This document shows, one piece after another, positions 19,113 to 42,786 of a stretch of 64,000 nt of DNA. This DNA is from Mobula birostris. Lineage: Eukaryota. The stretch spans positions 164,919,415-164,983,414 of the forward strand of contig NC_092375.1 in NCBI RefSeq assembly GCF_030028105.1. Reading direction: 5' to 3'. The notes below the pieces were generated by a model. It was not told the origin of the DNA, did not search any database, and saw only the letters and a program-made list of their open reading frames with translations. A program made the position numbers and the translations under genes. Each line of letters opens with the position of its first letter. Positions within the stretch are counted from its first letter, which is position 1.

Positions 19113-19421
19113 AAATAGTATGTAAATGAATTATTGACTCACTGGGCGTATCACTGAGATTAGACAGAATCAGCACCATTAAAATATTTTTTTCAAAAAT
19201 AGGTTTTGTACTAATACTTACTTTAATGGAAGTATGTGATTCAAGATCTTGGCAATTCAATTTTGCCACATACATTCTTCTTATCAGTCGATTGTGCTCT
19301 CTGGTCTAATTTGTATAATATATGTTTGTCATCCAGGTTTCATTTCACTTTTCAAACATTTTTGAAAAAATGTCCATTCATTTCAATGTCTTGCATCTAA
19401 AATTAAAAATGTTCTTTAAAG

Positions 19422-19493
19422 TGTCCAAGAAGCCAATTTCTGATGAAGTTAAGCCACAGCTTGTTTCAAGAAAAGAAGTTCCTCCAACCAAAG
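19422..19493 (+). CDS. ttn: PEVK array exon A1 (72 nt, one codon shorter than other copies)
   Basis: tttaaag|TGTCC...ACCAAAG|gtatgg; VSKKPISDEVKPQLVSRKEVPPTK. Confidence 0.9.
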
Positions 19494-19722
19494 GTATGGG
19501 AATATGCATCCCATCATTTTAAACAGAGCCCTTGAAAAAGTAATCACGTGATCAATTGGCTTTACTGTGTGTGTGCGCGCACATGTTTGTATATACGGTG
19601 ATGTCTTGTGCATTTATGCTGAATCTTGATTCATATTTGGTCACTTGTTTTGTGCATTTTATCATTAAGTCGAGTGGAGATATTAAATTAGAAGTAATAC
19701 AGTGAAGCATGAAACTGTAAAT

Positions 19723-19799
19723 CAGGGGATCCCAACCTGGAGTCCATGGACCCCTCGGGCATCCATGGCTCCATGGCATAAAAAGGTTGGGAACCCCTG
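19723..19799. mobile_element. 77 bp hAT-like MITE, one copy per array unit (also 21858-21934, 28051-28127, 30401-30477, and units 5-8)
   Basis: 16 bp TIRs caggggatcccaacct / aggttgggaacccctg (15/16 match); no clean TSD. Confidence 0.6.
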
Positions 19800-20566
19800 C
19801 GTTGAAAATAAGACAGAAAATGCAATGTGCCTATGATTTATGTAGAGAATTCACTCAGCCAACCAGAAAACGATGGAAAAATTCATCCGGTTATGAACAG
19901 TTAACATTTCAGTTCTGAGAGCCTTCATCAAAACAAAGGAAGACAGAAACAAATTACTCTAGATGGCAGAGAAAATGGAGGAGGATAATGGGTGTAACAA
20001 AAGGAATTTCTTTGATGGGGTGAAAATGTGGAACTGTGAAGAGACAGTAAAGCCTCCTGTATATGACTTATTGCCTTCCCTCATCTTTTTTGCATTCTTG
20101 ACTAATTTGTTTCTTTATCAGTTCTGATGAAAGTTGTCTGACCCAAAACATCAGCTGTTCATCCTTCCACACATGTGCCTAGCTTGCTGAGTTTTCCCAG
20201 CATTTTCTGTTTTTACTTACTTGGGGTAGTGAGTTCTTCTCATAAATCATGAGCACATTTTGAAGTAATCACACCATAAAGTGCTATACCTCAGAAAAAA
20301 ATATTTTCATCAAAGTTATTTGAGTTCATTGAGAGAATTTGTTATTAAAATAATTAGTGGGCAGTCAAGCATTTCTGCTTGAATTATTAAGTCAGCTGCA
20401 TTTGATGTAATTTCTGTACACATTATAAATATGTGCTCGTCACAAGATGATGAACTATGTCAAGTCTTATTTGTAGTAATGCATTTAATGTTATGTGCAT
20501 TGCTATTTTAAATATTCTTAGTGTATGCCTCTGAAATTCTCTTCTCCAAAAATTACATTTTTCAAG

Positions 20567-20641
20567 TGCCCGAGGTTCCTGAGTTTATTCCTGAAGAAAA
20601 GAAGCCAGTTGTACCAGAAGAAGAAGTTGCTCCAATGAAAG
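20567..20641 (+). CDS. ttn: PEVK array exon B1 (75 nt)
   Basis: ttcaag|TGCCC...ATGAAAG|gtacaa; VPEVPEFIPEEKKPVVPEEEVAPMK. Confidence 0.9.
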
Positions 20642-21552
20642 GTACAAAAGAAGGCACATATTTTATATTAGTTACTCTTTCAATAAATGATGCTATCATA
20701 ATTGCATTAGCTTGGAGAGTAATTATATTTTAGGGGACCTTTTAATTTTGTGTCTTTTGTTTGTGTATCTGTTTAATTTTTACTGTATCAGTTTGTCCTT
20801 GAAACCAAACTCTAATGTAAGATAGTGTTTGGTGGTTGTAATTGTCTGATGCTGTACAAGCTTTTTGTGTATCAAAATGACAGTTTAGTCCTGCAGCACA
20901 GTTGTGTTGAATGTCAAACTGCTGATGGGACATATTGGGGTAACCAATGTGTAGTGGACCTGTATATGGTAACTGCTGTTTAAAAAAGGCATGAAAAATC
21001 AAGGAACTGCTAACCTCTTAGCCAGGCATCATTAGTTGGGAAGATTCTGGAACCTGTCATAAATAAACCAATATAATATTATGATTGAACAAACAGAACA
21101 TGGGTTTATGAAGGTAGAGTACATAAGACTAAACTCCAGGAATATTTGGGGATGTATCTGATAGAGTGGATGAGGGAGATCCAGTGTAGATATTAAGTAA
21201 TTGGCTTTTCAGAAGGCTTGAATCGGTTCTGAAGAGATTAGTCAACAACGTTCATGCATGAATTGAAGTAGCATCTGCAATTACTGAAAACATGGAAGAG
21301 AAGTGGAAAATATCTAATAATTTTTTGAAAATAGGTTTTGTACTAATACTTTCTTTAATGGAATATGAGATTCAAGATCTTGGCAACTCAATTTTGCCAC
21401 ATACATTCTTCTTTTCAGTCGATTGTGCTCTGTGGTCTAATTTGTATAATATATGTTTGTCAACCATGTTTCATTTCACTTTTCATACATTTTTCAAAAA
21501 ATGTCCATTAATTTCAATGTCCTGCATCTAAAATTATAAATGTTCTTTAAAG

Positions 21553-21627
21553 TGCCCAAGAAGCCGATTTCTGATGAAGTTAAGCCACAGATTGTTTCAA
21601 GAAAAGAAAAGGTTCCTCCAACCAAAG
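21553..21627 (+). CDS. ttn: PEVK array exon A2 (75 nt)
   Basis: aaag|TGCCC...AAAG|gtatgg; VPKKPISDEVKPQIVSRKEKVPPTK. Confidence 0.9.
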
Positions 21628-22701
21628 GTATGGGAATATGCATCCCATCATTTTAAACGGAGCCCTTGAAAAGTAATCACATGATCAATTGGCTTTACTG
21701 TGTGTGTGCGCGCGCACATGTTTGTATATACGGTGATGTCTTGTGCATTTATGCTGAATCTTGATTCATATTTGGTCACTTGTTTTGTGCATTTTATCAT
21801 TAAGTCGAGTGGAGATATTGAATTAGAAATAGTATACTGAAGCATGAAACTGTAAATCAGGGGATCCCAACCTGGAGTCTATGGACCCCTCGGGCATCCA
21901 TGGCTCCATGGCATAAAAAGGTTGGGAACCCCTGCGTTGAAAATAAGACAGAAAATGCAATGTGCCTATGATTTATGTAGAGAATTCACTCAGCCAACCA
22001 GAAAACGATGGAAAAATTCATCCGGTTATGAACAGTTAACATTTCAGTTCTGAGAGCCTTCATCAAAACAAAGGAAGACAGAAACAAATTACTCTAGATG
22101 GCAGAGAAAATGGAGGAGGATAATGGGTGTAACAAAAGGAATTTCTTTGATGGGGTGAAAATGTGGAACTGTGAAGAGACAGTAAAGCCTCCTGTATATG
22201 ACTCATTGCCTTCCCTCATCTTTTTTGCATTCTTGACTAATTTGTTTCTTTATCAGTTCTGATGAAAGTTGTCTGACCCAAAACATCAGCTGTTCATCCT
22301 TCCACACATGTGCCTAGCTTGCTGAGTTTTCCCAGTATTTTCTGTTTTTACTTACTTGGGGTAGTGAGTTCTTCTCATGAATCGTGAGCACATTTTGAAG
22401 TAATCACACCATAAAGTGCTATACCTCAGAAAAAAATATTTTCATCAAAGTTATTTGAGTTCATTGAGAGAATTTGTTATTAAAATAATTAGTGGGCAGT
22501 CAAGCATTTCTGCTTGAATTATTAAGTCAGCTGCATTTGATGTAATTTCTGTACACATTATAAATATGTGCTCGTCACAAGATGATGAACTATGTCAAGT
22601 CTTATTTGTAGTAATGCATTTAATGTTATGTGCATTGCTATTTTAAATATTCTTAGTGTATGCCTCTGAAATTCTCTTCTCCAAAAATTAAATTCTTCAA
22701 G

Positions 22702-22776
22702 TGCCCGAGGTTCCTGAGTTTATTCCTGAAGAAAAGAAGCCAGTTGTACCAGAAGAAAAAGTTGCTCCACTGAAAG
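22702..22776 (+). CDS. ttn: PEVK array exon B2 (75 nt)
   Basis: caag|TGCCC...CTGAAAG|gtacga. Confidence 0.9.
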
Positions 22777-23211
22777 GTACGAAAGAAGACACATATTTTA
22801 TATTACAGTTACTCTTTCAATAAATGATGCTATCATAATTGCATTACCTTGGAAAGTAATTCTATTTTAGGGTTCCTTCTAATTTTTTGTCTTTTGTTTG
22901 TGTATCTGTATAATTTTTACTGTATCAGTTTGTCCTCCTTGAAACCAAAAATCTCTAATGTAAAATAGTGTTTGATGATTGTAATTGTCTGATGCTGTAT
23001 AAGCTTTTTGTGTATCAAAATGACAGTTGTACTCCTGCAGCAAAGTTGTGTTGAATGTCAAACTAGTGATGGGACATATTGGGGTAACCAATGTGTAGTG
23101 AACCTGTATATGGAAACTGCTGTTTAAAAAAAGGCAAGGACAATCAGGGAACTGCTAACCTGTTAGCCTGGCATCATTAGTTAGGAAGATTCTGGAACCT
23201 GTAATAAATAA

Positions 23212-26200
23212 TGGTGGTGGCATCCGTTGGTCTCGCGAGACCATGGATCTGCGCCTGGAAGGTCTTGCTTCAGTGTGTGTTAGAACAGCGTCTGTTGTGG
23301 CTGTAGAGGCCCACACGGGAGTGACAGTCTCGGCTGCATCGACTACACTTGAAGGCGCTGTCCTCCAGTAGTGTCTTGGTACTGTTTTTCCGATGAGTGC
23401 ACTTTTCTTCAGCAGCAAGCCTCAGCTTCTCTTCTCCCCTTTTTAGATCTGCATAGTTCCAGCCTCCAGTGAGAGCGATCGCTTGCGATGTCCTCCCACC
23501 TCTCGATGTTTATTTTCAGTGACTTCATGTCTCTCTTGCAAACGTCTTTAAAACGAAGATGGGGTGGCCCTTGTGCTCTCTTGCTGGAGGCCAGTTCCCC
23601 GTACAGCAGGTCTTTCGGGATCCTCCTGTCTGACATGTGGTGTACATGACCCAGCCAGCGGAGACGGCGTTGTTGGTGCAGGGTGAAGAGGCTGGGTATC
23701 TGGGCGTGGGCCAGGACCTCATTGTTGGTGACTCGGTCAGTCCACGTGATGTCTAGGATGCGTCTCAGGCTGTGAAGGTGGAAGGCGTTGAGACGCCGCT
23801 GTTGTCTATAGTAGAGGCTCCAGGTCTTGCTGCCGCAAAGCAGTGTGCTGAGGATGCAGGCCCTGTAGACTGCAACTTTGGTGTGCGTCGTCAGCTTTCT
23901 GTTCTCCCAGACTCTGTTTGTCAGCCTGGCGAATGTTGAGGCTGCTCGTCCGATCTGTCTGTTGATCTCCGGGTCTAGGGAGAGGCTGTCCATGATGGTG
24001 GAGCCAAGGTATGTAAACTTGTGAACTACCTCCAGCTCATAGTTGTTGATGGTAATGGCAGGGGGGTGCTCAGCGCTCTGGCCCAACACGTTGGTTTTCT
24101 TCAGGCTGATGGTCAAGCTGAAGTCCTGGCAGGCTCTTGAAAAGCTGTCCATGAGGCGTTGCAGTTGCTCTTCAGAGTGTGTTGCCAGTGCCACGTCGTC
24201 TGCAAACAACATGTCCCTGATGAGTACTTCACAAACCTTGGTTTTTGCCCTCAGCCAGGACAGAATGAACAGCCTCCCGTCCGATCTGGTGTGGAGGTAG
24301 ACACCATCAGTTGGTGTTCTAAAGGCATGTTCAGCATGACTGCGAAGTAGATGCCAAACAGGGTGGGGTAAGCACACAGCCCTGCTTCACACCGCTGTAG
24401 ATGTTGAAGGCCTCTGAAGAAGAGCTGTCGAACTGAACAACGCCCTTCACATCTGTGTGGAATGATTGAACTATCCTGAGGAGCCTCGGGGGACAACCAA
24501 TCCTGGCGAGGATTCTGAACAGGCCGTCTCTGCTCACAAGGTCGAAGGCCTTCGTAAGGTCAATGAAAGCAACATAGAGTGGTTGTCTTTGCTCTCTGCA
24601 TTTCTCTTGTAGCTGTCGATGGGAGAAGATCATGTCGATTGTGGAGCGTTCTGACCTGAAACTGTACTGAGACTCGGGATATACCCTTTCAGCTCTTTTC
24701 TGCAGTCTGTTCAGGACCACGCAGGTGAAGAACTTCCCAATGATGCTCAGCAAGGAGATTCCCCTGTAGTTGTTACAGTGGCTTCTGTCCCCTTTATTCT
24801 TTTATGTGGTGACAATGTTGCAGTCTCTCATGCCTTGCGGCACTGTTCTTTCTATCCAGCACTGGCACAGTAGTTCGTGCAGGTGGTTTAGCAGGACGCC
24901 CTTTGCGCATTTGATGGCCTCTGGTGGAATGCCATCCAATCCTGGTGCCTTCCCAGTGGGCAGGCTGTCGATGACTTTACTCAGCTCTTCGGCAGTCGAC
25001 AATGTATCAAGTTCCTCCATGACAGGCAGGCATTCCACGACATCTAGCGCGCTGTCCGAGATGCTGTTTCCTCTGGAGAAGAGTTCGGAATAATGCTCCA
25101 TCCATCTCTCCATCTGCTTGCTTTTGTCATTGTTGGTCTCGCCTGTTATGGTTTTCAATGGTGCTGTCTTGCTCTGGGTTGGCCCATTGGCTTTCTTGAT
25201 CCCCTCGTACACTCCATGGATGTTGCCTGTGTCAAATGATGACTGAATGCTTTTGCATAGTTGTAGCCAGTAGTCATTTGCACAGTGTCTGGCTGTTTCC
25301 TGGGCCTTGCTTCTTGCTGTCCTTAGCGCTTGCAGTGTTGCCTGGGTGGGGTGGCGTTTGTGCTCTAGTAGTGCAACACGCGTCACCTCGATGACAGCGG
25401 TGAGCTTGCTGGAGCTCACTTCAAACCAGTCCTGTGTCTTGCCCCGTTTCTTCCCGAAGGCCTTATGTGCAGTGCTGTGAATAGTGTCCCTGAGGGAGTC
25501 CCATCTCTGCTGAGCATCTCCTTCTGGTGGGTCTGCGAGGAGAGCATCCTCCAGTGACAATGAACTCTGCTTGCCTGGAGGCTTGGTGCAGTGCCTCTTC
25601 TTCGGCCGAAGTTTGATCTTGCAGCAAACCAGAGAGTGATCCGTGTCGCAGTCGGCACTCTGAAAGGAGCGAGTCATGAGCATGTTTCTCAGGTGACGGC
25701 GTCTTGTGATTATCAGGTCCAACTGGTGCCAGTGTTTGGAGCGGGGATGTCACCAAGACACTTTGTGCTGAGCTTTTGGTCTGGAAGTAGGTGTTGGTGA
25801 CACACAATTAGTGGAGCATGCAAAGCTCGAGCAGTCGTTGCCCGTTGTCATTCATGCTGCCGATCCCATACCGTCCCAGACAGCTTGGCCAGGAATTGTG
25901 GTCGGTGCCCACTCTGGCATTGAAATCACCAAGTAGCAGCAACTGTTGCTGACTTGGGATCTCCTGTATCATCATTGAGAGCTGGTCGTAGAATTCGTCC
26001 TTTGTGTCTTGTGTAGAACAGAGGGTTGGGGCATAGACACTGACAAAGTTGACAGGCCCGTTGGATGTGTGGAGTCAAAGTGAGAAAATCCACTCCGTCC
26101 CTTTCTCACTAGGCTCTACCATCTTCAGCAGCGAGTACTTCATAGCAAAGCCGACACCATGCTCTCCGGTCTTGTCTGAGCCCTTCCCCTGCCAGAAGAA

Positions 26201-27224
26201 GGTATAGTCTCTTTCTCGTAGCGTTCCCGATTCTGCAAGACGTGTCTCTTGGAGCGTTGCAATGTCCACTTGGAGCCTTGACAGTTCATTGTTACTCACT
26301 GCTGTCTTGCGTGAGTCGCTGATCTCCCGAAGGTCATCTGATATACCAGTTGTCATGGTCCGTATATTCCAGCATCCTAGTCTGAGTGCTGGCTTCTTTC
26401 TTTGTCTTCTAGTTGTGCTTGGTGCAGCGTTTACAGTCCGCAGTTCGAGCTACTTGTATCCCTAAGCTCCACGCACCCAGTGGAGTGGGTGGACTGTGGC
26501 AGGACAGCACCTAATTGGCTGGGGGCTGCCCAGCTTGAGGCGGGCAGTAGCTGTCCAGTGAGACGCGATAGTCTCTCCCTCCGTCGAAAGCAACCCCTGG
26601 CGCCTTGCTCTACACCAGTCGAGCACAGGCTTATAACCAGTAGACTGCTGCTTTCCATGTTGTGCTGTCGCGGTGAGGCGACGCTGGAGTGTCCTCTCCA
26701 GGGCGCAGGCGTGGGAAGGTTGTATGGATGATCAGCAGTTGCCCATGCTGCAAGTCTCCCCTCTCCACAACACCGATGTTGTCCAAGGGAAGGGCAAGGG
26801 CCGATACAGCTTGGCACCAGTGATATCGCAGGAGTTGCCAGAACGAAGTTGAAAGCAATGTCGGACTGCCTTAGGGACTCCAGCTCCGGATTTGTCCTCA
26901 GGGTTTACTCCCAAAGCCTTTCCAATCAGTGGGTATGGCCGCAAGGCAGCGGAGGTTTGAAATCAGAGTTTCCCTCTCTTAGATGGACTGCCATCCCAGG
27001 CTGACGAACTCCATCTACCCAAAGCACTGGTTTTAAGGCGCCAGGACCCGCCTTCACCCCTTCTCCTGTCAGCAGAAACAGTTCCGCCAGGCTTAGAGGC
27101 TAAGCCACACCAGAAGGCCAGGAGTTGGACTTAGTTGTCAGAGGCTATTTGAGGCGCATGTCACGAGGAGCACTTTTATGTAGTCAGAGCTTGTCCCCAC
27201 TACCACTCCTCGGCTTGACAAGCT
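23212..27224 (-). mobile_element. Near full-length RTE-clade LINE (~4.0 kb), antisense to titin
   Basis: Imperfect TSD tggaacctgtaataaataa (23193-23211) / tggaactgtaataactaa (27225-27242); APE and RT domains; short (cca)n tail. Confidence 0.92.
23409..26420 (-). pseudogene. Disrupted RTE ORF (endonuclease plus reverse transcriptase) split by frameshifts and stops
   Basis: GCWNIRT, LQETRL, ADCDTDHSLV, FIDLTKAFD, GVKQGCVL, LFADD and LRWLGHV motifs lie in different frames. Confidence 0.9.
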
Positions 27225-27225
27225 T
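27063..27225 (-). ncRNA. Candidate HDV-like self-cleaving ribozyme at the RTE 5' end, partly degenerate
   Basis: P2 CUCCUG/CAGGAG, P3 GCC/GGC, GG for P1.1, P4 CGGAA/UUCUG, J4/2 CUGA, P1 AAGCUUG/UAAGCCU (6 of 7 pairs). Confidence 0.6.
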
Positions 27226-27729
27226 GGAACTGTAATAACTAAACCAATATAATAGTATGATTGAGCAAAAAGAGCATGGATTTATGAAAGTAGAGTACAT
27301 AAGACTAAACTCCAAGAATATTTGGCGATGTATCTGACAGAGTGGATGAGGGACATCCAGTGTAGGTATTAAGTAATTGGCTTTTCAGAAGGCTTGAATC
27401 AGTTCTCAAGAGATTAGTCAACAAAGTTCATGCATGAATTGAAGTAGCATCTGCAATTACTGAAAACGTGAAAGAGAAGTGGAAAATATCTAATAATTTT
27501 TTTGAAAATAGGTTTTGTACTAATACTTTCTTTAATGGCATATGAGATTCAAGATCTTGGCAATTCAATTTTGCCACATACATTCTTCTTATCAGTCGAT
27601 TGTGCTCTGTGGTCTAATTCGTGTAATATATGTTTGTCAACCATGTTTCATTTCACTTCTCATACATTTTTCAGAAAATGTCCACTCATTTCAATGTCTT
27701 GCATCTAAAATTAAAAATGTTCTTTAAAG

Positions 27730-27804
27730 TGTCCAAGAAGCCAATTTCTGATGAAGTTAAGCCACAGATTGTTTCAAGAAAAGAAAAGGTTCCTCCAACC
27801 AAAG
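27730..27804 (+). CDS. ttn: PEVK array exon A3
   Basis: aaag|TGTCC...AAAG|gtatgg, 75 nt. Confidence 0.9.
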
Positions 27805-28378
27805 GTATGGGAATATGCATCCCATCATTTTAAACAGAACCCTTGAAAAGTAATCACATGATCAATTGGCTTTACTGTGTGTGCTCACGCACATATGTGT
27901 TTGTGTGTGTGTGTTTGTATGTACGGTGATGTCTTGTGCATTTATGGTGAATCTTGATTCGTATTTGGTCATTTGTTTCGTGCATTTTATCATTAAGTCG
28001 AGTGGAGATATTGAATTAGAAATAGTATACTGAAGCATGAAACTGTAAATCAGGGGATTCCAACCTGGAGTCCATGGACCCCTCGGGCAACCATGGCTCC
28101 ATGGCATAAAAAGGTTGGGAACCCCTGCGTTGAAAATAAGACAGAAAATGCAATGTGCCTGTGATTTATGTAGAGAATTCACTCAGCCAACGAGAAAACA
28201 ATGGAAGAATTCATCCGGTTACGAACAGTTAACATTTCAGTTCTGAGAGCCTTCATCAAAACAAAGGAAGGCAAAAACAAATTTTTCTAGATAGCAGAGA
28301 AAATGGAGGAGGATAATGGGTGTAACAAAAGGAATTTCTTTGATGGGGTGAAAATGTGCAACTGTGAAGAGACAGTAA

Positions 28379-28569
28379 ACACAAAATAATCTGTAGATGC
28401 TGGGATCAAAGCAACACTCACAACACGCTGGAGGAACTCAGCAGGTCTAGCAGCATCCGTGGAATCCTGTGGCAGCACCCTCAGGTTCTGGCCCGAAACA
28501 TTGACTGATCGTTTCCATGGATGCTGCCCGACCTGCTGAGTTCCTCCAGCGTGTTGTGAATGTTGCAAT
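28379..28569. mobile_element. 191 bp PLE-derived foldback insert in units 3-8 (also 30729-30919, 33066-33256, 35417-35607, 37757-37947, 40097-40287)
   Basis: 47 bp inverted arms (28418-28464 / 28513-28559); TSD agacagtaa; empty site in units 1-2. Confidence 0.85.
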
Positions 28570-29087
28570 AGACAGTAATGCCTCCTATATATGACTCATT
28601 GCCTTCCCTCATCTTTTTTGCGTTCTTGACAAATTTATCAGTTCTGATGAAAGTTGTCTGACCCAAAACATCAGCTGTTCATCCTTCCACACATGTGCCA
28701 AGCTTGCTGAGTTTTTCCCAGCGTTTTCTGTTTTTACTTACTTGGGGTAGTGAGTTTTTCTCATGAATCATGAGCACATTTTGAAGTAAACACACCATAA
28801 AGTGCTATACCTCAGAAAAAAATATTTTCAGCAAAATTATTTGAGTTCATTGAGAGAATTTGTTATTAAAATAATTAGTGGGCAGTCAAGCATTTCTGCT
28901 TGAATTTTTAAGTCAGCTGCATTTGCTGTAATTTCTGTACACATTATAAATATGTGCTCGTCACAAGATGATGAACTATGTCAGGTCTTATTTGTAGTAA
29001 TGCACGTAATGTTATGTGCATTGCTTTTTTAAATATTCTTAATGTATGCCTCTGAAATTCTCTTGTCTAAAAATTAAATTCTTCAAG

Positions 29088-29162
29088 TGCCTGAGGTTCC
29101 TGAGTTTATTCCTGAAGAAAAGATGCCAGTTGTACCAGAAGAAAAAGTTGCTCCAATGAAAG
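29088..29162 (+). CDS. ttn: PEVK array exon B3
   Basis: caag|TGCCT...AAAG|gtacaa; EKMPVV variant. Confidence 0.9.
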
Positions 29163-30080: not shown

Positions 30081-30155
30081 TGTCCAAGAAGCCAATTTCT
30101 GATGAAGTTAAGCCACAGATTGTTTCAAGAAAAGAAAAGGTTCCTCCAACCAAAG
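30081..30155 (+). CDS. ttn: PEVK array exon A4
   Basis: aaag|TGTCC...AAAG|gtatgg. Confidence 0.9.
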
Positions 30156-31436: not shown

Positions 31437-31511
31437 TGCCTGAGGTTCCTGAGTTTATTCCTGAAGAAAAGATGCCAGTTGTACCAGAAGAAAAAGTTGC
31501 TCCAATGAAAG
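31437..31511 (+). CDS. ttn: PEVK array exon B4
   Basis: caag|TGCCT...AAAG|gtacaa; EKMPVV variant. Confidence 0.9.
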
Positions 31512-32429
31512 GTACAAAAGAAGACACATATTTTATATTACAGTTACTCTTTCAATAAATGAGCTATCATAATTGCATTACCTTGGAAAGTAATTCTATT
31601 TTAGGAGACCTTTTTTTTTGTCTTTTGTTTGTGTATCTGTATAATGTTTACTGTATCAGTTTGTCCTTCTTGAAACCAAAAATCTCTAATGTAAAATAGT
31701 GCTTGGTGGTTGTACTTGTCTGATGCTGTACAAGCTTTCTGTGTATCAAAATGACAGTTGTAGTCCTGCAGCAAAGTTGTGTTGAATGTCAAACTGGTGA
31801 TGGGACATATTGGGGTAACCGATGTGTAGTGAACCTGAATATATGGAAACTACTGTTTAAAAAAAGGCAAGAAAAATCAGGGAACTGCTGACCTGTTAGC
31901 CTGGCATTATTAGTTAGGAAGATTCTGGAACCTGTAATAAATAAACCAATATAATATTATGATTGAGCAAAGAGAACATGGATTTATGAAATTAGAGTAC
32001 ATAAGACTAAACTCCAGGATATTTGGGGATGTATTTGATAGAGTGGATGAGGGAGATCCAGTGTAGATATTAAGTAATTGGCTTTTCAGAAGGCTTGAAT
32101 CAGTTCTCAAGAGATTAGTCAACAATGTTCATGCATGAATTGCAGTAGCATCTGCAATTACTGAAAACTTGAAAGAGAAGTGGAAAATATGTAATTCTTT
32201 TTGAAAATAGGTTTTGTACTAATACTTCTTTTAATGGAAGTATGAGATTCAAGATCTTGGCAATTCAATTTTGCCACATACTTTCTTCTTATCAGTCGAT
32301 TGTGCTCTGTGGTCTAATTCGTGTAATATATGTTTGTCAACCATGTTTCATTTCACTTCTCCTACATTTTTCAGAAAATGTCCATTCATTTCAAGGTCTT
32401 GCATCTAAAATTATAAATGTTCTTTAAAG

Positions 32430-32504
32430 TGTCCAAGAAGCCAATTTCTGATGAAGTTAAGCCACAGATTGTTTCAAGAAAAGAAAAGGTTCCTCCAACC
32501 AAAG
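32430..32504 (+). CDS. ttn: PEVK array exon A5
   Basis: aaag|TGTCC...AAAG|gtatgg. Confidence 0.9.
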
Positions 32505-33774
32505 GTATGGGAATATGCATCCCATCATTTTAAATAGAACCCTTGTAAAAGTAATCACATGATCAATTGGCTTTACTGCGTGTGCTCACGCACGTGTGTG
32601 TTTGTATATACGGTGATGTCTTGTGCATTTATGGTGAATCTTCATTCGTATTTTGTCACTTGTTTTGTGCACTTTATCATTAATTTGAGTGGAGATATTG
32701 AATTAGAAGTAGTATACTGAAGCATGAAACTGTAAATCATGGGATCCCAACCTGGAGTCCATGGACCCCTCGGGCATCCATGGCTCCATGGCATAAAATT
32801 GTTGGAGACCCTTGCGTTGAAAATAAGACAGAAAATGTAATGTGCCTGTGATTTATGTAGAGGATTCACTCAGCGAACCAGAAAAGAATGGAAGAATTCA
32901 TCCAGTTATGAACAGTTAACATTTCAGTTCTGAGAGCCTTCATCAAAACAAAGGAAGACAAAAACAAATTACTCTAGATAGCAGAGAAAATGGAGGAGGA
33001 TAATGGGTGTAACAAAAGGAATTTCTTTGATGGGGTGAAAATGTGCAACTGTGAAGAGACAGTAAACACAAAATAATCTGTAGATGCTGGGATCAAAGCA
33101 ACACTCACAACACGCTGGAGGAACTCAGCAGGTCCAGCAGCATCCGTGGATTCCTGTGGCAGCACCCTCAGGTTCTGGCCCGAAACATTGACTGATCGTT
33201 TCCATGGATGCTGCCCGACCTGCTGAGTTCCTCCAGCGTGTTGTGAATGTTGCAGTAGACAGTAATGCCTCCTGTATATGACTCATTGCCTTCCCTCATC
33301 TTTTTTGCATTCTTGACAAATATATCAGTTCTGATGAAAGTTGTCTGACCCAAAACATCAGCTGTTCATCCTTCCACACATGTGCCAAGCTTGCTGAGGT
33401 TTTCCCAGCATTTTCTGTTTTTACTTACTTGGGGTAGTGAGTTCTTCTCATGAATCATGAGCACATTTTGAAGTAATCACAACATAAAGTGCTATACCTC
33501 AGAAAAAAATATTTTCAGCAAAATTATTTGAGTTCGTTGAGAGAATTTGTTATTAAAATAATTAGTGGGCAGTCAAGCATTTCTGCTTGAATTTTTAAGT
33601 CAGCTGCATTTGATGTAATTTCTGTACACATTATATATATGTGCTCGTCACAAGATGATGAACTATGTCAGGTCTTATTTGTAGTAATGCACGTAATGTT
33701 ATGTGCATTGCTTTTTTAAATATTCTTAATGTATGCCTCTGAAATTCTCTTGTCTAAAAATTAAATTCTTCAAG

Positions 33775-33849
33775 TGCCTGAGATTCCTGAGTTTATTCCT
33801 GAAGAAAAGAAGCCAGTTGTACCAGAAGAAAAAGTTGCTCCACTGAAAG
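33775..33849 (+). CDS. ttn: PEVK array exon B5
   Basis: caag|TGCCT...CTGAAAG|gtacaa; VPEIPE...APLK. Confidence 0.9.
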
Positions 33850-34768
33850 GTACAAAAGAAGGCACATATTTTATATTACAGTTACTCTTTCAATAAATGA
33901 GCTATCATAATTGCATTACCTTGGAAAGTAATTCTATTTTAGGAGACCTTTTTTTTTTGTCTTTTGTTTGTGTATCTGTATAATGTTTACTGTATCAGTT
34001 TGTCCTTCTTGAAACCAAAAATCTCTAATGTAAAATAGTGCTTGGTGGTTGTACTTGTCTGATGCTGTACAAGCTTTCTGTGTATCAAAATGACAGTTGT
34101 AGTCCTGCAGCAAAGTTGTGTTGAATGTCAAACTGGTGATGGGACATATTGGGGTAACCGATGTGTAGTGAACCTGAATATATGGAAACTACTGTTTAAA
34201 AAAAGGCAAGAAAAATCAGGGAACTGCTGACCTGTTAGCCTGGCATTATTAGTTAGGAAGATTCTAGAACCTGTAATAAATAAACCAATATAATATTATG
34301 ATTGAGCAAACAGAACATGGATTTATGAAATTAGAATACATAAGACTAAACTCCAGGATATTTGGGGATGTATTTGATAGAGTGGATGAGGGAGATCCAG
34401 TGTAGATATTAAGTAATTGGCTTTTCAGAAGGCTTGAATCAGATCTCAAGAGATTAGTCAACAATGTTCATGCATGAATTGCAGTAGCATCTGCAATTAC
34501 TGAAAACTTGAAAGAGAAGTGGAAAATATGTAATTTTTTTTGAAAATAGGTTTTCTACTAATACTTTCTTTAATGGATGTATGAGATTCAAGATCTTGGC
34601 AATTCAATTTTGCCACATACATTCTTCTTATCAGTCGATTGTGCTCTGTGGTCTAATTCGTGTAATATATGTTTGTCAACCATGTTTCATTTCACTTCTC
34701 CTACATTTTTCAGAAAATGTCCATTCATTTCAATGTCTTGCATCTAAAATTATAAATGTTCTCTAAAG

Positions 34769-34843
34769 TGTCCAAGAAGCCAATTTCTGATGAAGTTAAG
34801 CCACAGATTGTTTCAAGAAAAGAAAAGGTTCCTCCAACCAAAG
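34769..34843 (+). CDS. ttn: PEVK array exon A6
   Basis: ctctaaag|TGTCC...AAAG|gtatgg. Confidence 0.9.
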
Positions 34844-36125
34844 GTATGGGAATATGCATCCCATCATTTTAAATAGAACCCTTGAAAAAGTAATCACATG
34901 ATCAATTGGCTTTACTGCGTGTGCTCACGCACGTGTGTGTTTGTGTGTGTGTTTGTATATACGGTGATGTCTTGTGCATTTATGGTGAATCTTGATTCGT
35001 ATTTGGTCACTTGTTTTGTGCATTTTATCATTAAGTCGAGTGGAGATATTGAATTAGAAGTAGTATACTGAAGCATGAAACTGTAAATCAGGGGATCCCA
35101 ACCTGGAGTCCATGGACCCCTCGGGCATCCATGGCTCCATGGCATAAAATGGTTGGGAACCCCTGCGTTGAAAATAAGACAGAAAATGCAATGTGCCTGT
35201 GATTTATGTAGAGAATTCACTCAGCGAACCAGAAAACAATGGAAAAATTCATCCAGTTATGAACAGTTAACATTTCAGTTCTGAGAGCCTTCATCAAAAC
35301 AAAGGAAGATAGAAACAAATTACTCTAGATAGCAGAGAAAATGGAGGAGGATAATGGGTGTAACAAAAGGAATTTCTTTGATGGGGTGAAAATGTGCAAT
35401 TGTGAAGAGACAGTAAACACAAAATAATCTGTAGATGCTGGGATCAAAGCAACACTCACAACACGCTGGAGGAACTCAGCAGGTCTAGCAGCATCCGTGG
35501 AATCCTGTGGCAGCACCCTCAGGTTCCGGCCCGAAACATTGACTGATCGTTTCCATGGATGCTGCCCGACCTGCTGAGTTCCTCCAGCGTGTTGTGAATG
35601 TTGCAATAGACAGTAATGCCTCCTGTGTATGACTCATTGCCTTCCCTCATCTTTTTTGCGTTCTTGACAAATTTATCAGTTCTGATGAAAGTTGTCTGAC
35701 CCAAAACATTAGCTGTTCATCCTTCCACACATGTGCCAAGCTTGCTGAGTTTTTCCCAGCATTTTCTGTTTTTACTTACTTGGGGTAGTGAGTTCTTCTC
35801 ATGAATCATGAGCACATTTTGAAGTAATCACAACATAAAGTGCTATACCTCAGAAAAAAATATTTTCAGCAAAATTATTTGAGTTCGTTGAGAGAATTTG
35901 TTATTAAAATAATTAGTGGGCAGTCAAGCATTTCTGCTTGAATTTTTAAGTCAGCTGCATTTGATGTAATTTCTGTACACATTATAAATATGTGCTCGTC
36001 ACAAGATGATGAACTATGTCAGGTCTTATTTGTAGTAATGCACGTAATGTTATGTGCATTGCTTTTTTAAATATTCTTAATGTATGCCTCTGAAATTCTC
36101 TTGTCTAAAAATTAAATTCTTCAAG

Positions 36126-36200
36126 TGCCTGAGGTTCCTGAGTTTATTCCTGAAGAAAAGAAGCCAGTTGTACCAGAAGAAAAAGTTGCTCCAATGAAAG
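36126..36200 (+). CDS. ttn: PEVK array exon B6
   Basis: caag|TGCCT...AAAG|gtacaa. Confidence 0.9.
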
Positions 36201-37118
36201 GTACAAAAGAAGGCACTAATTTTATATTACAGTTACTCTTTCAATAAATGAGCTATCATAATTGCATTACCTTGGAAAGTAATTCTATTTTAGGAGACCT
36301 TTTTTTTTGTCTTTTGTTTGTGTATCTGTATAATGTTTACTGTATCAGTTTGTCCTTCTTGAAACCAAAAATCTCTAATGTAAAATAGTGCTTGGTGGTT
36401 GTACTTGTCTGATGCTGTACAAGCTTTCTGTGTATCAAAATGACAGTTGTAGTCCTGCAGCAAAGTTGTGTTGAATGTCAAACTGGTGATGGGACATATT
36501 GGGGTAACCAATGTGTAGTGAACTTGAATATATGGAAACTGCTGTTTAAAAAAAGGCAAGAAAAATCAGGGAACTGCTGACCTGTTAGCCTGGCATTATT
36601 AGTTAGGAAGATTCTGGAACCTGTAATAAATAAACCAATATAATATTATGATTGAGCAAAGAGAACATGGATTTATGAAATTAGAGTACATAAGACTAAA
36701 CTCCAGGATATTTGGGAATGTATTTGATAGAGTGGCTGAGGGAGATCCAGTGTAGATATTAAGTAATTGGCTTTTCAGAAGGCTTGAATCAGTTCTCAAG
36801 AGGTTAGTCAGCAATGTTCATGCATGAATTGAAGTAGCATCTGCAATTACTGAAAACGTGAAAGAGAAGTGGAAAATATGTAATTCTTTTTGAAAATAGG
36901 TTTTGTACTAATACTTCTTTTAATGGAAGTATGAGATTCAAGATCTTGGCAATTCAATTTTGCCACATACTTTCTTCTTATCAGTCGATTGTGCTCTGTG
37001 GTCTAATTCGTGTAATATATGTTTGTCAACCATGTTTCATTTCACTTCTCCTACATTTTTCAGAAAATGTCCATTCATTTCAATGTCTTGCATCTAAAAT
37101 TATAAATGTTCTTTAAAG

Positions 37119-37193
37119 TGTCCAAGAAGCCAATTTCTGATGAAGTTAAGCCACAGATTGTTTCAAGAAAAGAAAAGGTTCCTCCAACCAAAG
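37119..37193 (+). CDS. ttn: PEVK array exon A7
   Basis: aaag|TGTCC...AAAG|gtatgg. Confidence 0.9.
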
Positions 37194-38465
37194 GTATGGG
37201 AATATGCATCCCATCATTTTAAATAGAACCCTTGAAAAAGTGATCACATGATCAATTGGCTTTACTGCGTGTGCTCACGCACGTGTGTGTGTTTGTATAT
37301 ACGGTGATGTCTTGTGAATTTATGGTGAATCTTGATTCGTATTTGGTCACTTGTTTTGTGCATTTTATCATTAAGTCGAGTGGAGATATTGAATTAGAAG
37401 TAGTATACTGAAGCATGAAACTGTAAATCAGGGGATCCCAAACTGGAGTCCATGGACCCCTCGGGCATCCATGGCTCCATGGCATAAAATGGTTGGGAAC
37501 CCCTGCGATGAAAATAAGACAGAAAATGCAATGTGCCTGTGATTTATGTAGAGAATTCACTCAGCTAACCTGAAAACAATGGAAAAATTCATCCGGTTAT
37601 GAACAGTTAACATTTCAGTTCTGAGAGCCTTCATCAAAACAAAGGAAGATAGGAACAAATTACTCTAGATAGCAGAGAAAATGGAGGAGGATAATGGGTG
37701 TAACAAAAGGAATTTCTTTGATGGGGTGAAAATGTGCAACTGTGAAGAGACAGTAAACACAAAATAATCTGTAGATGCTGGGATCAAAGCAACACTCACA
37801 ACACGCTGGAGGAACTCAGCAGGTCCAGCAGCATCAGTGGAATCCTGTGGCAGCACCCTCAGGTTCCGGCCCGAAACATTGACTGATCGTTTCCATGGAT
37901 GCTGCCCGACCTGCTGAGTTCCTCCAGCGTGTTGTGAATGTTGCAATAGACAGTAATGCCTCCTGTATATGACTCATTGCCTTCCCTCATCTTTTTTGCG
38001 TTCTTGACAAATTTATCAGTTCTGATGAAAGTTGTCTGACCCAAAACATTAGCTGTTCATCCTTCCACACATGTGCCAAGCTTGCTGAGTTTTTCCCAGC
38101 ATTTTCTGTTTTGACTTACTTGGGGTAGTGAGTTCTTCTCATGAATCATGAGCACATTTTGAAGTAATCACACCATAAAGTGCTATACCTCAGAAAAAAA
38201 TATTTTCAGCAAAATTATTTGAGTTCGTTGAGAGAATTTGTTATTAAAATAATTAGTGGGCAGTCAAGCATTTCTGCTTGAATTTTTAAGTCAGCTGCAT
38301 TTGATGTAATTTCTGTACACATTATAAATATGTGCTCGTCACAAGATGATGAACTATGTCAGGTCTTATTTGTAGTAATGCACGTAATGTTATGTGCATT
38401 GCTTTTTTAAATATTCTTAATGTATGCCTCTGAAATTCTCTTGTCTAAAAATTAAATTCTTCAAG

Positions 38466-38540
38466 TGCCTGAGGTTCCTGAGTTTATTCCTGAAGAAAAG
38501 AAGCCAGTTGTACCAGAAGAAAAAGTTGCTCCAATGAAAG
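38466..38540 (+). CDS. ttn: PEVK array exon B7
   Basis: caag|TGCCT...AAAG|gtacaa. Confidence 0.9.
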
Positions 38541-39448
38541 GTACAAAAGAAGGCACTAATTTTATATTACAGTTACTCTTTCAATAAATGAGCTATCATA
38601 ATTGCATTACCTTGGAAAGTAATTCTATTTTAGGAGACCTTTTTTTTTGTCTTTTGTTTGTGTATCTGTATAATGTTTACTGTATCAGTTTGTCCTTCTT
38701 GAAACCAAAAATCTCTAATGTAAAATAGTGCTTGGTGGTTGTACTTGTCTGATGCTGTACAAGCTTTCTGTGTATCAAAATGACAGTTGTAGTCCTGCAG
38801 CAAAGTTGTGTTGAATGTCAAACTGGTGATGGGTAACCAATGTGTAGTGAACTTGAATATATGGAAACTACTGTTTAAAAAAAGGCAAGAAAAATCAGGG
38901 AACTGCTGACCTGTTAGCCTGGCATTATTAGTTAGGAAGATTCTGGAACCTGTAATAAATAAACCAATATAATATTATGATTGAGCAAACAGAACATGGA
39001 TTTATGAAATTAGAGTACATAAGACTAAACTCCAGGATATTTGGGGATGTATTTGATAGAGTTGATAAGGGAGATCCAGTGTAGATATTAAGTAATTGGC
39101 TTTTCAGAAGGCTTGAATCAGTTCTCAAGAGATTAGTCAACAATGTTCATGCATGAATTGAAGTAGCATCTGCAATTACTGAAAACGTGAAAGAGAAGTG
39201 GAAAATATGTAATTTTTTTTTGAAAATAGGTTTTGTACTAATACTTTCTTTAATGGAAGTATGAGATTCAAGATCTTGGCAATTCAATTTTGCCACATAC
39301 TTTCTTCTTATCAGTCGATTGTGCTCTGTGGTCTAATTCGTGTAATATATGTTTGTCAACCATGTTTCATTTCACTTCTCCTACATTTTTCAGAAAATGT
39401 CCATTCATTTCAATGTCTTGCATCTAAAATTATAAATGTTCTTTAAAG

Positions 39449-39523
39449 TGTCCAAGAAGCCAATTTCTGATGAAGTTAAGCCACAGATTGTTTCAAGAAA
39501 AGAAAAGGTTCCTCCAACCAAAG
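39449..39523 (+). CDS. ttn: PEVK array exon A8
   Basis: aaag|TGTCC...AAAG|gtatgg. Confidence 0.9.
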
Positions 39524-40806
39524 GTATGGGAATATGCATCCCATCATTTTAAATAGAACCCTTGAAAAAGTAAACACATGATCAATTGGCTTTACTGCGT
39601 GTGCTCACGCACGTGTGTGTTTGTGTGTGTGTTTGTATATACGGTGATGTCTTGTGCATTTATGGTGAATCTTGATTCGTATTTGGTCACTTGTTTTGTG
39701 CACTTTATCATTAAGTCGAGTGGAGATATTGAATTAGAAGTAGTATACTGAAGCATGAAACTGTAAATCAGGGGATCCCAACCTGGAGTCCATGGACCCC
39801 TCGGGCATCCATGGCTCCATGGCATAAAATGGTTGGGAACCCGTGCATTGAAAATAAGACAGAAAATGCAATGTGCCTGTGATTTATGTAGAGAATTCAC
39901 TCAGCTAACCTGAAAACAATGGAAAAATTCATCCGGTTATGAATAGTTAACATTTCAGTTCTGAGAGCCTTCATCAAAACAAAGGAAGATAGAAACAAAT
40001 TACTCTAGATAGCAGAGAAAATGGAGGAGGATAATGGGTGTAACAAAAGAAATTTCTTTGATGGGGTGAAAATGTGCAACTGTGAAGAGACAGTAAACAC
40101 AAAATAATCTGTAGATGCTGGGGTCAAAGCAACACTCACAACACGCTGGAGGAACTCCGCAGTTCCAGCAGCATCCGTGGAATCCTGTGGCAGCACCCTC
40201 AGGTTCCGGCCCGAAACATTGACTGATCGTTTCCATGGATGCTGCCCAACCTGCTGAGTTCCTCCAGCGTGTTGTGAATGTTGCAATAGACAGTAATGCC
40301 TCCTGTATATGACTCATTGCCTTCCCTCATCTTTTTTGCGTTCTTGACTAATTTATCAGTTCTGATGAAAGTTGTCTGACCCAAAACATCAGCTGTTCAT
40401 CCTTCCACACATGTGCCAAGCTTGCTGAGTTTTTCCCAGCATTTTCTGTTTTGACTTACTTGGGGTAGTGAGTTCTTCTCATGAATCATGAGTACATTTT
40501 GAAGTAATCACACCATAAAGTGCTATACCTCAGAAAAAAATATTTTCATCAAAGTTATTTGAGTTCATTGAGAGAATTTGTTATTAAAATAATTAGTGGG
40601 CAGTCAAGCATTTCTGCTTGAATTTTTAAGTCAGCTGCATTTGCTGTAATTTCTGTACACATTATAAATATGTGCTCGTCACAAGATGATGAACTATGTC
40701 AGGTCTTATTTGTAGTAATGCACGTAATGTTATGTGCATTGCTGTTTTAAATATTCTTAAATGTATGCCTCTGAAATTCTCTTATCCAAAAATTAAATTC
40801 TTCAAG

Positions 40807-40881
40807 TGCCCGAGGTTCCTGAGTTTATTCCTGAAGAAAAGAAGCCAGTTGTACCAGAAGAAAAAGTTGCTCCAATGAAAG
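40807..40881 (+). CDS. ttn: PEVK array exon B8
   Basis: caag|TGCCC...AAAG|gtacga. Confidence 0.9.
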
Positions 40882-41624
40882 GTACGAAAGAAGGCACATA
40901 TTTTATATTACAGTTACTCTTTCAATAAATGATGTTATCATAATTGCATTATCTTGGAAAGTAATTCTATTTTAGGGGACCTTCTAATTTTTTGTCTTTT
41001 GTTTGTGTATCTGTATAATTTTTACTGTATCAATTTGTTCTTCTTGAAACCAAAACTCTAAGTAAAACAGTGATTGATGGTTGTAATTGTCTGATGCTGG
41101 ACAAGCTTTTTGTGTATCAAAATGACAGTTGTACTCCTGCAGCAAAGTTGTGTTGAATGTCAAACTGGTGATTGGACATGTTGGGGTAACCAATGTGTAG
41201 TGGACCTGTATATGGAAACTGCTGTTTAAAAAAAGGCAAGAAAAATTAGGGTACTGCTGACCTGTTAGCCTGGCATCATTAGTTAGGAAGATTCTGGAAC
41301 CTGTAATAAATAAACCAATATAATATTATGATTGAGCAAACAAAGCATGGATTTATGAAAGTAGAGTACATAAGAGTAAACTCCAGCAATATTTGGGGAT
41401 GTATCTGATAGATTAGAAGAGGGAGATCCAGTGTAAATATTAAGTAATTGGCTTTTCAGAAGTTCTCAGGAGATTCGTCAACAATGTTCATGCATGAATT
41501 GAAGTAGCATCTGCAATATGAAAATGTGAAGGAGAAGTGGAAAATATGTGAAAACTTAGCAGGTCAGACAGCATCAGTGGAGCAGATCTTAAACTCTAAA
41601 TCATTACTTGTGCAGAATCACCTT

Positions 41625-41963: not shown

Positions 41964-42092
41964 AGAATCACCTTTTTATAGACAGATGTAATTATGCGGA
42001 AAAGTAATTTTAAATTAAGAACATTTTATTTTTGCTCCCAACTTGCTAGTTCAGTTGGTATAAATATAACAGGACCATTCTGTTAGTTCTGT

Positions 42093-42711: not shown

Positions 42712-42786
42712 TGCCTGAGGTTCCCAAGTTTGTTCCTGAAGAAGTGAAACCAGTTACACAAAAAGAAAAGGGCATTCCAATGAAAG
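42712..42786 (+). CDS. ttn: PEVK exon, B-like (75 nt)
   Basis: ctttaag|TGCCT...ATGAAAG|gtacag; VPEVPKFVPEEVKPVTQKEKGIPMK. Confidence 0.88.

Follow-up and report, generated by a model that had tools for sequence, protein, structure and literature searches.

An eight-unit tandem array of a two-exon PEVK module in the titin gene of Mobula birostris

The titin gene (TTN/connectin) of Mobula birostris (organism A) carries 22 kb of head-to-tail repeats at the N-terminal start of its I-band PEVK segment. Eight units, introns included, each hold two short in-frame PEVK exons. The most probable reading (roughly 0.8) is a genuine lineage-specific tandem amplification that has been reshuffled by recombination and provides alternatively spliced capacity, the core of which is mostly skipped in one RNA sample. 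PEVK length sets the passive stiffness of muscle, on which the array may have an effect. All positions refer to the window, the whole stretch of 64,000 nucleotides that was analysed.

A BLAST search of the window with unit 4 bounds the array at 19187-41549 on the + strand, extending the originally predicted end at 41515, and confirms eight whole units of ~2.34 kb of the two-exon module. The repeat search (8 copies) returns start-to-start spacings of 2131, 6177, 2351, 2349, 2339, 2350 and 2330 nt, the same seven numbers that had been predicted for exon A.

19187-21317, + strand: unit U1
21318-27494, + strand: unit U2, carrying a retrotransposon insert
27495-29845, + strand: unit U3
29846-32194, + strand: unit U4
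32195-34533, + strand: unit U5
34534-36883, + strand: unit U6
36884-39213, + strand: unit U7
39214-41549, + strand: unit U8

The array consists of a whole number of units with a common junction, at which only ~6 nt of microhomology (AAAATA) and no transposon are seen; a transposon-mediated origin of the junction was dropped on this ground. A chance origin of the repeat is excluded by 2.3-kb units at 94-99% identity. Tandem Repeats Finder, with a longest searched period of 500 (below the unit length), reported no repeat in the whole window.

The gene is titin because I-set Ig exons lie upstream of the array, with titin I65-I70 as their best match, and older PEVK exons lie downstream. Nine Ig exons (936-8413 and 12638-13328) are found on the same strand with one domain per exon [Pfam I-set, E 1e-9 to 1e-26; best solved structure 3b43, E 1.7e-97]. 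An Atlas search with an Ig exon led no further than 'Chordata'. A 2278-nt RNA contig runs from the upstream exons through to exon A, and its loose-end letters match 17360-17380. Past the array follow six older B-like exons and then canonical PEVK-type exons of 78-84 nt at 57011-62904.

17310-17384, + strand: upstream exon, 75 nt, non-PEVK; RNA from both species shows it spliced to exon A
42712-42786, + strand: first exon past the array and first of the older B-like 75-nt group of six; organism-B RNA shows it joined to exon B
45508-45582, + strand: older B-like 75-nt exon
47301-47375, + strand: older B-like 75-nt exon
~49478-49552, + strand: older B-like 75-nt exon
51126-51200, + strand: older B-like 75-nt exon
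~52694-52768, + strand: older B-like 75-nt exon

These Ig exons, the same-phase 75-nt exons with their high P, E, V and K content, and RNA joints to other titin exons bear out the assignment of the module to titin PEVK. In Pfam, exon B reaches 14 bits against PPAK (PF02818; E 0.063, cut-off 21) and there is no match for exon A or six further exons, the pieces of 24-27 aa from single exons being too short for this test.

All 16 array exons have an AG acceptor and a GT donor and share one phase; 15 are 75 nt long and one is 72 nt. P, E, V and K make up 64% of exon A and 80-84% of exon B. Letters that distinguish units lie at positions 3, 14 and 39 of exon A, besides its 3-nt deletion, and at positions 5 (C/T), 9, 37, 57 and 69 of exon B.

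19422-19493, + strand: exon A of U1, shortened to 72 nt by an in-frame loss of 3 nt, I>L; best-covered exon A variant in RNA
20567-20641, + strand: exon B of U1
21553-21627, + strand: exon A of U2, with 2 unit-specific letters that are present in the B-to-A RNA joint
22702-22776, + strand: exon B of U2
27730-27804, + strand: exon A of U3
29088-29162, + strand: exon B of U3, K>M variant
30081-30155, + strand: exon A of U4
31437-31511, + strand: exon B of U4, K>M variant
32430-32504, + strand: exon A of U5
33775-33849, + strand: exon B of U5
34769-34843, + strand: exon A of U6
36126-36200, + strand: exon B of U6
37119-37193, + strand: exon A of U7
38466-38540, + strand: exon B of U7
39449-39523, + strand: exon A of U8
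40807-40881, + strand: exon B of U8

The prediction of 16 intact, frame-preserving exons adding about 400 aa therefore stands for the exons. The total is 399 codons, as exon A of U1 has 72 nt, and 'adding' holds as capacity only, given the RNA depths reported below. Across 150 exon columns there are 8 substitution events, and across 2006 intron columns 241, which is 2.3-fold fewer in exons (Poisson P = 0.007). Constraint on the exon sequence itself is not evident, given that six of the eight exon substitutions change the amino acid.

Units differ from one another by 1.3-5.8%. Substitution divergence is 1.25-2.6% among U3-U7, 3-4% for U8, 3.8% between U1 and U2 and ~5% between U1/U2 and the rest, so that the edge units are the most diverged. 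U1 and U2 have nineteen sites in common with the 3' half of U8; judged from these sequence patterns all three appear to be old, and the units are mosaic. U3 and U4 show no difference over the last ~870 alignment columns, and exact tracts of 1196 nt and 660 nt are found between units. Identical stretches as long as 1196 nt, at a divergence of 1.3-5.8%, indicate that the units are still exchanging sequence; together with the mosaic units and the diverged edges they support the recombination-driven evolution that had been proposed. The introns had been called near-identical, which overstates an identity of 94-99% even with such tracts.

Two transposon insertions mark subsets of the units. The extra 3.8-4.0 kb of U2 comes from a degenerate non-LTR retrotransposon with a target-site duplication of ~19 nt (23193-23211 / 27225-27242). 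It retains reverse transcriptase [RVT_1, E 1.7e-17] and weak Exo_endo_phos remnants (E 0.003; both Pfam), and its Atlas neighbours include RVT_1+DUF6451 clusters. The original prediction of an RTE element is thus right as to a degenerate endonuclease/reverse transcriptase insert, but the RTE clade is not established by the Pfam or Atlas matches. The second marker is a 200-nt foldback transposon with the 9-nt target-site duplication AGACAGTAA, located at the same site in U3-U8.

23212-27224, - strand: degenerate non-LTR retrotransposon in U2, reverse transcriptase and weak remnants of an APE endonuclease, with the ORF disrupted across several frames
37758-37957, no strand assigned: foldback transposon in U7
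28380-28579, no strand assigned: foldback copy
30730-30929, no strand assigned: foldback copy
33067-33266, no strand assigned: foldback copy
35418-35617, no strand assigned: foldback copy
40098-40297, no strand assigned: foldback copy

Foldback-related joints in the contigs run from 37757 to 37958 and from 37757 to 40298. A foldback-like repeat also adjoins the right array border at 41550. An Rfam search of 17000-46000 (E <= 0.1) gave no genuine family, ribozymes included; its sole matches, to Plastid-psbJ-4 below the gathering score, fall on three foldbacks and are chance hairpin matches.

The sister species (organism B) also has the array. Its array DNA contigs have a depth of 35-54 against 7.1-7.8 in the flank, and the same retrotransposon junction is present as a DNA loose end (run X9); both array and insertion are therefore older than the species split. 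Neither U1 nor U2 nor any organism-B contig contains the foldback, and in organism B a joint skipping exactly the foldback has a depth of 41.1. Its restriction to U3-U8 therefore marks amplification of a core in the M. birostris lineage, the alternative being that foldback-bearing units were lost in organism B. The organism-B unit differs by 3.3-4.3% from the core units and by ~6% from U1/U2. Array/flank depth ratios, which are contig word depths and not unit counts, are ~5-7 in organism B and ~8-13 in M. birostris. The missing foldback subfamily is a difference in make-up between the two species, and the lower ratio may reflect the predicted variability in copy number. The label 'young' fits the core only, since array and retrotransposon predate the split, and the core units differ by 1.3-2.6%, at least as much as the flanks of the two species (~1-1.3%). 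Core divergence above that of the flanks sits poorly with an amplification entirely after the split, if it has not been raised by exchange with older units.

An array over-expanded, collapsed or mis-ordered by the assembler is a very improbable explanation. K-mer depth in DNA run X1 is uniform per assembled copy, at 11.2-13.4 across subfamilies of 4-7 copies, and the 2-copy joint of the empty foldback site has a depth of 20.9. Depth thus scales with assembled multiplicity in the 2-, 4-5- and 7-copy k-mer classes and is at least that expected from the assembled copy number, and read depth gives no sign of assembly inflation. Both outer array junctions were recovered as loose ends in X1 contigs, so that both borders and the empty-site junction are found in read-derived contigs; the units, with 1.3-5.8% divergence, indels of their own, a retrotransposon in U2 alone and a foldback-marked subfamily, would be easily resolved by long accurate reads; and the independent species is also at multi-copy depth. 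What speaks for an artefact is that X1 is probably the assembly's own sample and so not independent, and that the flank depth of 6.4-8.9 lies 1.4-1.9-fold below the per-copy array depth of ~12. Because of this disagreement the exact copy number from depth is unreliable, and eight is not proven exact: the true mean could be up to ~1.9 times the assembled number, or the flank could be heterozygous.

Returning to a genuine amplification, the order of events may have been as follows. A 2.3-kb segment with two 75-nt same-phase PEVK exons would first have duplicated at the ~6 nt microhomology, and the small array would then have grown and been reshuffled repeatedly by unequal crossing-over and gene conversion. 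At a stage of few units the retrotransposon would have entered U2, before organism B split off. Later, in the M. birostris lineage, the 200-nt foldback would have inserted into one unit that was then amplified to the six-unit core U3-U8, and ongoing exchange would leave the exact tracts of up to 1.2 kb.

The RNA evidence comprises one run per species from unspecified tissue, in the form of assembler contigs, from which rare variants are lost. Run X20 is from the same individual as the assembly; a tool labels it 'probably DNA', but exon-only coverage (introns 0, exons 15-180) and spliced joints identify it as RNA. GT..AG joints lead from 38540 to 39449 (B to A) and from 38540 to 38466 (B to B), and the overhang of the A-to-B joint in RNA is TGCCCGAGGTTCCT. 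The titin mRNA joints found are upstream exon to A, A to B, B to A, B to B, B to the exon at 42712 and 42786 to the exon at 47301. The original prediction named exons that never appear in transcripts as its refutation; here exons of both types are spliced, with exact joints. Exon A depth in X20 is 31.8 for U1, 17.3 for U2 and 10.3 for the U3-U8 type, six copies together. The only B-to-A joint seen in X20 leads into exon A of U2; no B-to-A joint into core-type exon A was seen in that run, and the Met form of exon B that U3 and U4 carry left no trace there, other contigs explaining the depth in bin 38482-38522. This points, if weakly, to U3-U8-type exons being mostly skipped in X20, although variants on the other haplotype may differ. 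The mRNA in this sample would then be mainly upstream exon-A1-B1-A2-B2 plus B-to-B skips with little contribution from the core, and of an alternatively spliced capacity of up to 399 aa roughly 2-3 units' worth would be used in that tissue. In organism B, spliced exon A has a depth of ~92 (intron-bearing contigs removed), ~4 times that of single-junction contigs (20-21), which suggests several units per transcript.

How far the core matters to the protein can be read in several ways. The array would be a functional dial of spring length if most or all 16 exons were included in some muscles or stages, up to ~400 aa, with selection tuning the copy number between populations or species. We regard this as unlikely: in RNA of the same individual the depth of exon A of the type found in 6 of the 8 copies falls well below that of U1 alone, the core joints and the Met variant are missing from X20, and no sign of selection on copy number emerges. 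In its favour are the splicing of both exon types, the fourfold exon-A depth in organism B, the different array make-up of the two species, the 2.3-fold deficit of exon substitutions and the retention of frame and splice sites by 16 of 16 exons, which has a chance of ~0.04 under neutrality (a rough estimate from substitution rates). That value is only mildly improbable and is also compatible with the core as a neutral by-product, an intronic segmental duplication of no selective consequence, with effectively silent pseudo-exons kept intact by youth and gene conversion. The scarcity of core-type exon A in RNA, the six non-synonymous changes out of eight and exact tracts that indicate enough homogenisation to keep copies alike would all fit this possibility, which we hold to be a minority one. 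Core-type exon A is nevertheless present in spliced RNA at a depth of 10.3, exon columns vary less than intron columns, and functional PEVK exons under alternative splicing are likewise typically low in one tissue or another; the human duplicated block is reportedly missing from cardiac isoforms (PMC9142044). Somewhat speculatively, and with little weight, the core units may instead hold PEVK exons in silent reserve. Skipping in most muscle would be caused by the foldback hairpin between exons A and B, or else by neighbouring introns being nearly identical, and certain muscles or stages would turn inclusion on; in organism B, where the foldback is lacking, most units seem to be included. Spring length would in that case be set by the units spliced in and not simply by copy number.

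The preferred reading, an alternatively spliced lineage-specific amplification, has close parallels. In human TTN (exons 172-180, 181-189 and 190-198, plus 203-204), PEVK exon blocks with their introns have likewise been duplicated recently, in tandem and within the gene, with associated transposon sequences, alternatively spliced exons and recurrent copy-number change, also reported as PEVK variation in humans (PMC9142044; PMC6469411); ages of ~1 and 3 million years are quoted for the human duplications (PMC12241362). The array differs in its block (2 exons and 2.3 kb, eight times, against 9 exons, three times), in its position directly after a non-PEVK 75-nt exon at the N-terminal PEVK start (the human block lies in PEVK-CA) and in its transposon-free junction, and is an independent event in a distant lineage. 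As had been proposed, the array is an independent analogue of the human triplication; the idea of a 'convergent dial' is not new (PMC6469411; PMC9142044). Human, chimpanzee, orangutan, rat, mouse, star-nosed mole and koala all have PEVK duplications or triplications specific to their lineage, block duplication being the usual route of PEVK expansion and contraction; the non-human PEVK-CA cases, all mammalian, were recognised from dot plots, with neither expression data nor sister-species depth, and none is reported with eight copies (PMC6469411). The array leaves the general picture of titin evolution unchanged. It adds an independent non-mammalian case in which the repeat count is higher and two dated transposon markers put the events in order, together with a sister species whose array is differently built and same-animal RNA suggesting that the newest copies are hardly used. 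It offers a convenient natural system for asking whether PEVK exons are taken into the mRNA immediately after duplication, and what determines this. Cartilaginous-fish connectin/titin has also lengthened its I-band independently by tandem block duplication, of 6-Ig super-repeats (six in elephant shark, eight in whale shark, three in human); these are Ig exons of the middle-Ig segment, and PEVK splice variants but no PEVK block amplification were reported there (PMC12241362). The NEB triplicate region, an 8-exon tandem block with recurrent copy-number variation in another giant sarcomere gene (PMC9142044), concerns a different gene and protein repeat and is a mechanistic analogue only.

The array lies in titin, on the forward strand. 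For the one upstream Ig exon that was searched, the closest solved structure is titin I65–I70 (3b43), with a domain-summed E of 1.7e-97. The main features, in window positions, are as follows.

936–8413 and 12638–13328: nine ORF-sized I-set Ig exons (Pfam), upstream of the array
17310–17384: exon preceding the array in mRNA, 75 nt, non-PEVK-like
23212–27224, minus strand: non-LTR retrotransposon in unit 2, 4013 nt (RVT_1, E 1.7e-17)
42712, 45508, 47301, about 49478, 51126 and about 52694: six older 75-nt exons resembling exon B, downstream of the array
Up to 62904: classical PEVK exons of 78–84 nt, after the older B-like exons

Since the preceding exon is non-PEVK-like, the array opens the PEVK segment at its N-terminal end. 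Eight of the Ig exons lie within 7.5 kb (936–8413) at visibly periodic spacing.

Probes of 300 nt across 19187–41059 each find eight in-register copies in the window, with exon-A start-to-start spacings of 2131, 6177, 2351, 2349, 2339, 2350 and 2330, values identical to those of the original prediction. When unit 4 is aligned to the window by BLAST, every unit matches from position 1–4 to 2347–2349; the array is thus eight whole units (U1–U8, each with an exon A and an exon B), 19187–41549. Tandem Repeats Finder missed it because the period exceeds its maximum of 500. A regex and translation scan gives 16 exons, all preceded by AG, trailed by GT and in a single phase; exon A encodes VSKKPISDEVKPQIVSRKEKVPPTK and exon B VPEVPEFIPEEK(K/M)PVVPEEKVAPMK. 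Fifteen of the 16 are 75 nt long and exon A of U1 is 72 nt (a 3-nt in-frame loss), so the coding capacity is 399 codons. The predicted tandem amplification of a two-exon PEVK module is therefore right, with its 16 intact exons, and the predicted addition of about 400 aa is to be read as coding capacity. The Pfam PPAK match to exon B is below threshold, single 24-aa exons being too short for that test. The six older B-like exons come from a previous round of tandem duplication: they have 48–64% protein identity to exon B and the motif VPE[VI]P.F[IV].EE..., and lie 1.6–2.8 kb apart (42712–52768). The copies at 49478 and 52694, which may be decaying, were rejected by the filter for splicing and composition.

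Copy number was checked by contig word depth. Contigs of X1, a DNA run of M. birostris and probably the assembled sample, were compared over 37100–42900 and 38400–39600, depth per copy being the word depth of each exact contig over the number of times its 31-mers occur in the assembly. Six array contigs give 11.2–13.4 per copy, and the joint across 37758–37957 that lacks the foldback transposon, present in two copies (U1 and U2), has depth 20.9; across classes of two, four to five and seven copies depth thus scales with assembled multiplicity. Both outer junctions are recovered as loose ends, and the window has no N runs. Single-copy flank depth is 6.4–8.9 (41313–42900), below the per-copy array depth; this would mean a heterozygous or hemizygous flank, or else an average copy number over both haplotypes that is up to about 1.9 times eight. 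On both readings nothing suggests that the assembly contains too many units.

The description of the introns as near-identical was overstated. Substitution divergence is 1.25–2.6% among U3–U7, 3.1–4.2% between U8 and U3–U7, 3.8% between U1 and U2, and 4.7–5.8% between U1 or U2 and the remaining units. A (GT)n/(GTTT) microsatellite in the A–B intron varies by 12–18 nt among units (alignment columns 401–418, e.g. window 30240–30270); it explains a large part of what looks like local divergence, as well as the pattern common to U1, U2, U5 and U7. Similarity among the units is a mosaic: U3 and U4 have no differences in the last ~870 alignment columns and differ by 2–3% before them, the 3' half of U8 has 19 sites in common with U1 and U2, U6 and U7 have an exact 660-nt tract in common, and the longest exact tract, 1196 nt (28850–30045 = 31199–32394), spans a unit border. 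Tandem arrays under unequal crossing-over and gene conversion are diverged at the edges, homogenised inside and marked by long exact tracts, and from this general knowledge we infer that both processes shaped the array. Where one unit meets the next, the sequence has only AAAATA in common with the left border, which suggests that the first duplication was mediated by microhomology and not by a transposon.

Two insertions give the order of events. The retrotransposon in U2 has weak APE-endonuclease remnants, an ORF broken across frames and a target-site duplication of ~19 nt; its neighbours are of the DUF6451 type, and the RTE clade is a plausible assignment. The foldback, 200 nt with a 9-nt target-site duplication (AGACAGTAA), occupies the same site in the A–B intron of U3–U8 (the core) and is lacking from U1 and U2; its family is extremely abundant in the genome (word depth in the hundreds of thousands). 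A further copy lies between Ig exons at 3064–3268. The right array border adjoins a high-copy repeat (41550–42340) whose first letters (GAAAACTTAGCAGGTCAGACAGCATCAGTGGAG) resemble an arm of the foldback family.

A close sister species (organism B) has 60% of the sampled flank words, and divergence from the window is about 1–1.3% in its flank contigs. Its DNA contigs have depths of 35–54 in the array against 7.1–7.8 in the flank. Contigs of organism B at full array depth omit exactly 37758–37957 (depth 41.1 in DNA, 29.8 in intron-bearing contigs of the RNA run), so its units are without the foldback. One contig joins the retrotransposon 5' end at the same site (loose end at 38950, corresponding to window 27196–27224); the element had therefore inserted before the split, when the array must already have had at least a few units. 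The multi-copy unit of organism B, rebuilt over 38799–39497 from 20 listed substitutions, diverges from core units by 3.3–4.3% and from U1/U2 by about 6%, and has nine private sites. Units resemble each other more within than between species (the contigs having been chosen by likeness to U7/U8), which argues for concerted evolution or separate amplification. It is also possible that organism B lost foldback-bearing units, as divergence among core units is no smaller than that between the flanks of the two species.

The exons show suggestive signs of selection in their substitution pattern: 8 events in 150 exon columns compared with 241 in 2006 intron columns (Poisson P = 0.007), all eight splice-site dinucleotide columns invariant, and the sole exon indel in frame. 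With stops created by 4.7% of substitutions, the intron rates give a rough estimate of ~4% for the chance that none of the 16 exons would be broken in the absence of selection. Six of the eight exon substitutions alter the residue, which counts against constraint.

RNA evidence comes from one run per species, tissue unspecified, whose contigs attest presence, not absence. X20, from the same individual as X1, is labelled RNA with an automatic 'probably DNA'; all its clean intron bins are at depth 0 and its exons at 15–180, the pattern of RNA. Its GT..AG joints coincide exactly with the predicted exon borders, and three kinds of exon A are separable because contigs break at variant positions.

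38540 to 39449: joint of exon B to exon A, depth 17.3
38540 to 38466: joint of exon B to exon B, exon A skipped, depth 17.8
Upstream exons via 17384 into exon A: contig of 2278 nt
Overhangs of exon A to exon B: TGCCCGAGGTTCCT, as in the C-type exon B (U1, U2 and U8)
Exon A, U1 type (3-nt deletion and C at 39487): depth 31.8
Exon A, U2 type (two unit-specific letters, acceptor of the B-to-A joint): depth 17.3
Exon A, U3–U8 type (without U1 or U2 marker): depth 10.3

The contigs of the last two kinds run together into one of depth 31.2, a check on the depth bookkeeping. The six U3–U8 copies, out of eight in the genome, thus together yield about one-third as much signal as U1 alone, and relative to the upstream contig (depth 22.6) the mRNA has roughly 2–3 exon-A equivalents. 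The depth in bin 38482–38522 of X20 leaves nothing over for exon B with Met (U3/U4). X9, the RNA run of organism B, has joints of A to B, B to B, B to the 42712 exon and 42786 to the 47301 exon, alongside intron-bearing contigs. Its spliced exon-A depth of about 92, a rough figure, is ~4 times that of single-junction contigs (20–21), which suggests that most of its units are included in mRNA. Exon 42712–42786 has zero depth in X20 (42338–42900), yet X9 has joints that link it with exon B and with the 47301 exon; PEVK splicing may differ between the species or tissues, or coverage may have dropped out.

Duplication of PEVK exon blocks is established in mammals: a nine-exon block occurs three times, plus two extra exons, in human, with duplications in chimpanzee, orangutan, rat, mouse and star-nosed mole and a triplication in koala (PMC6469411). 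The human block has recurrent copy-number variation and is reported absent from cardiac isoforms (PMC9142044). Cartilaginous-fish titin was lengthened independently through Ig super-repeat duplication, with eight 6-Ig super-repeats in whale shark, and its PEVK is spliced differentially, with no PEVK block amplification reported (PMC12241362); the literature searched gave no case of PEVK block duplication outside mammals. Compared with the mammalian blocks, the unit here is smaller (two exons), the count higher (eight) and the position at the N-terminal end of the PEVK. The predicted dial for spring length, adding 400 aa, remains capacity plus analogy: the capacity is present, its function would follow by analogy, and X20 points the opposite way for the youngest copies.

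A search of 17000–46000 with Rfam (E ≤ 0.1) found neither an HDV-like ribozyme at 27063–27225 nor a hammerhead at 44305–44340, its only matches being sub-threshold hairpins on three foldbacks. Just past the array, a 291-aa ORF (43142–44017, plus strand) has a weak GIY-YIG match (E 0.007) and is questionably Penelope-like; at the window start, a 216-aa APE endonuclease ORF (162–812, minus strand) belongs to another non-LTR element.
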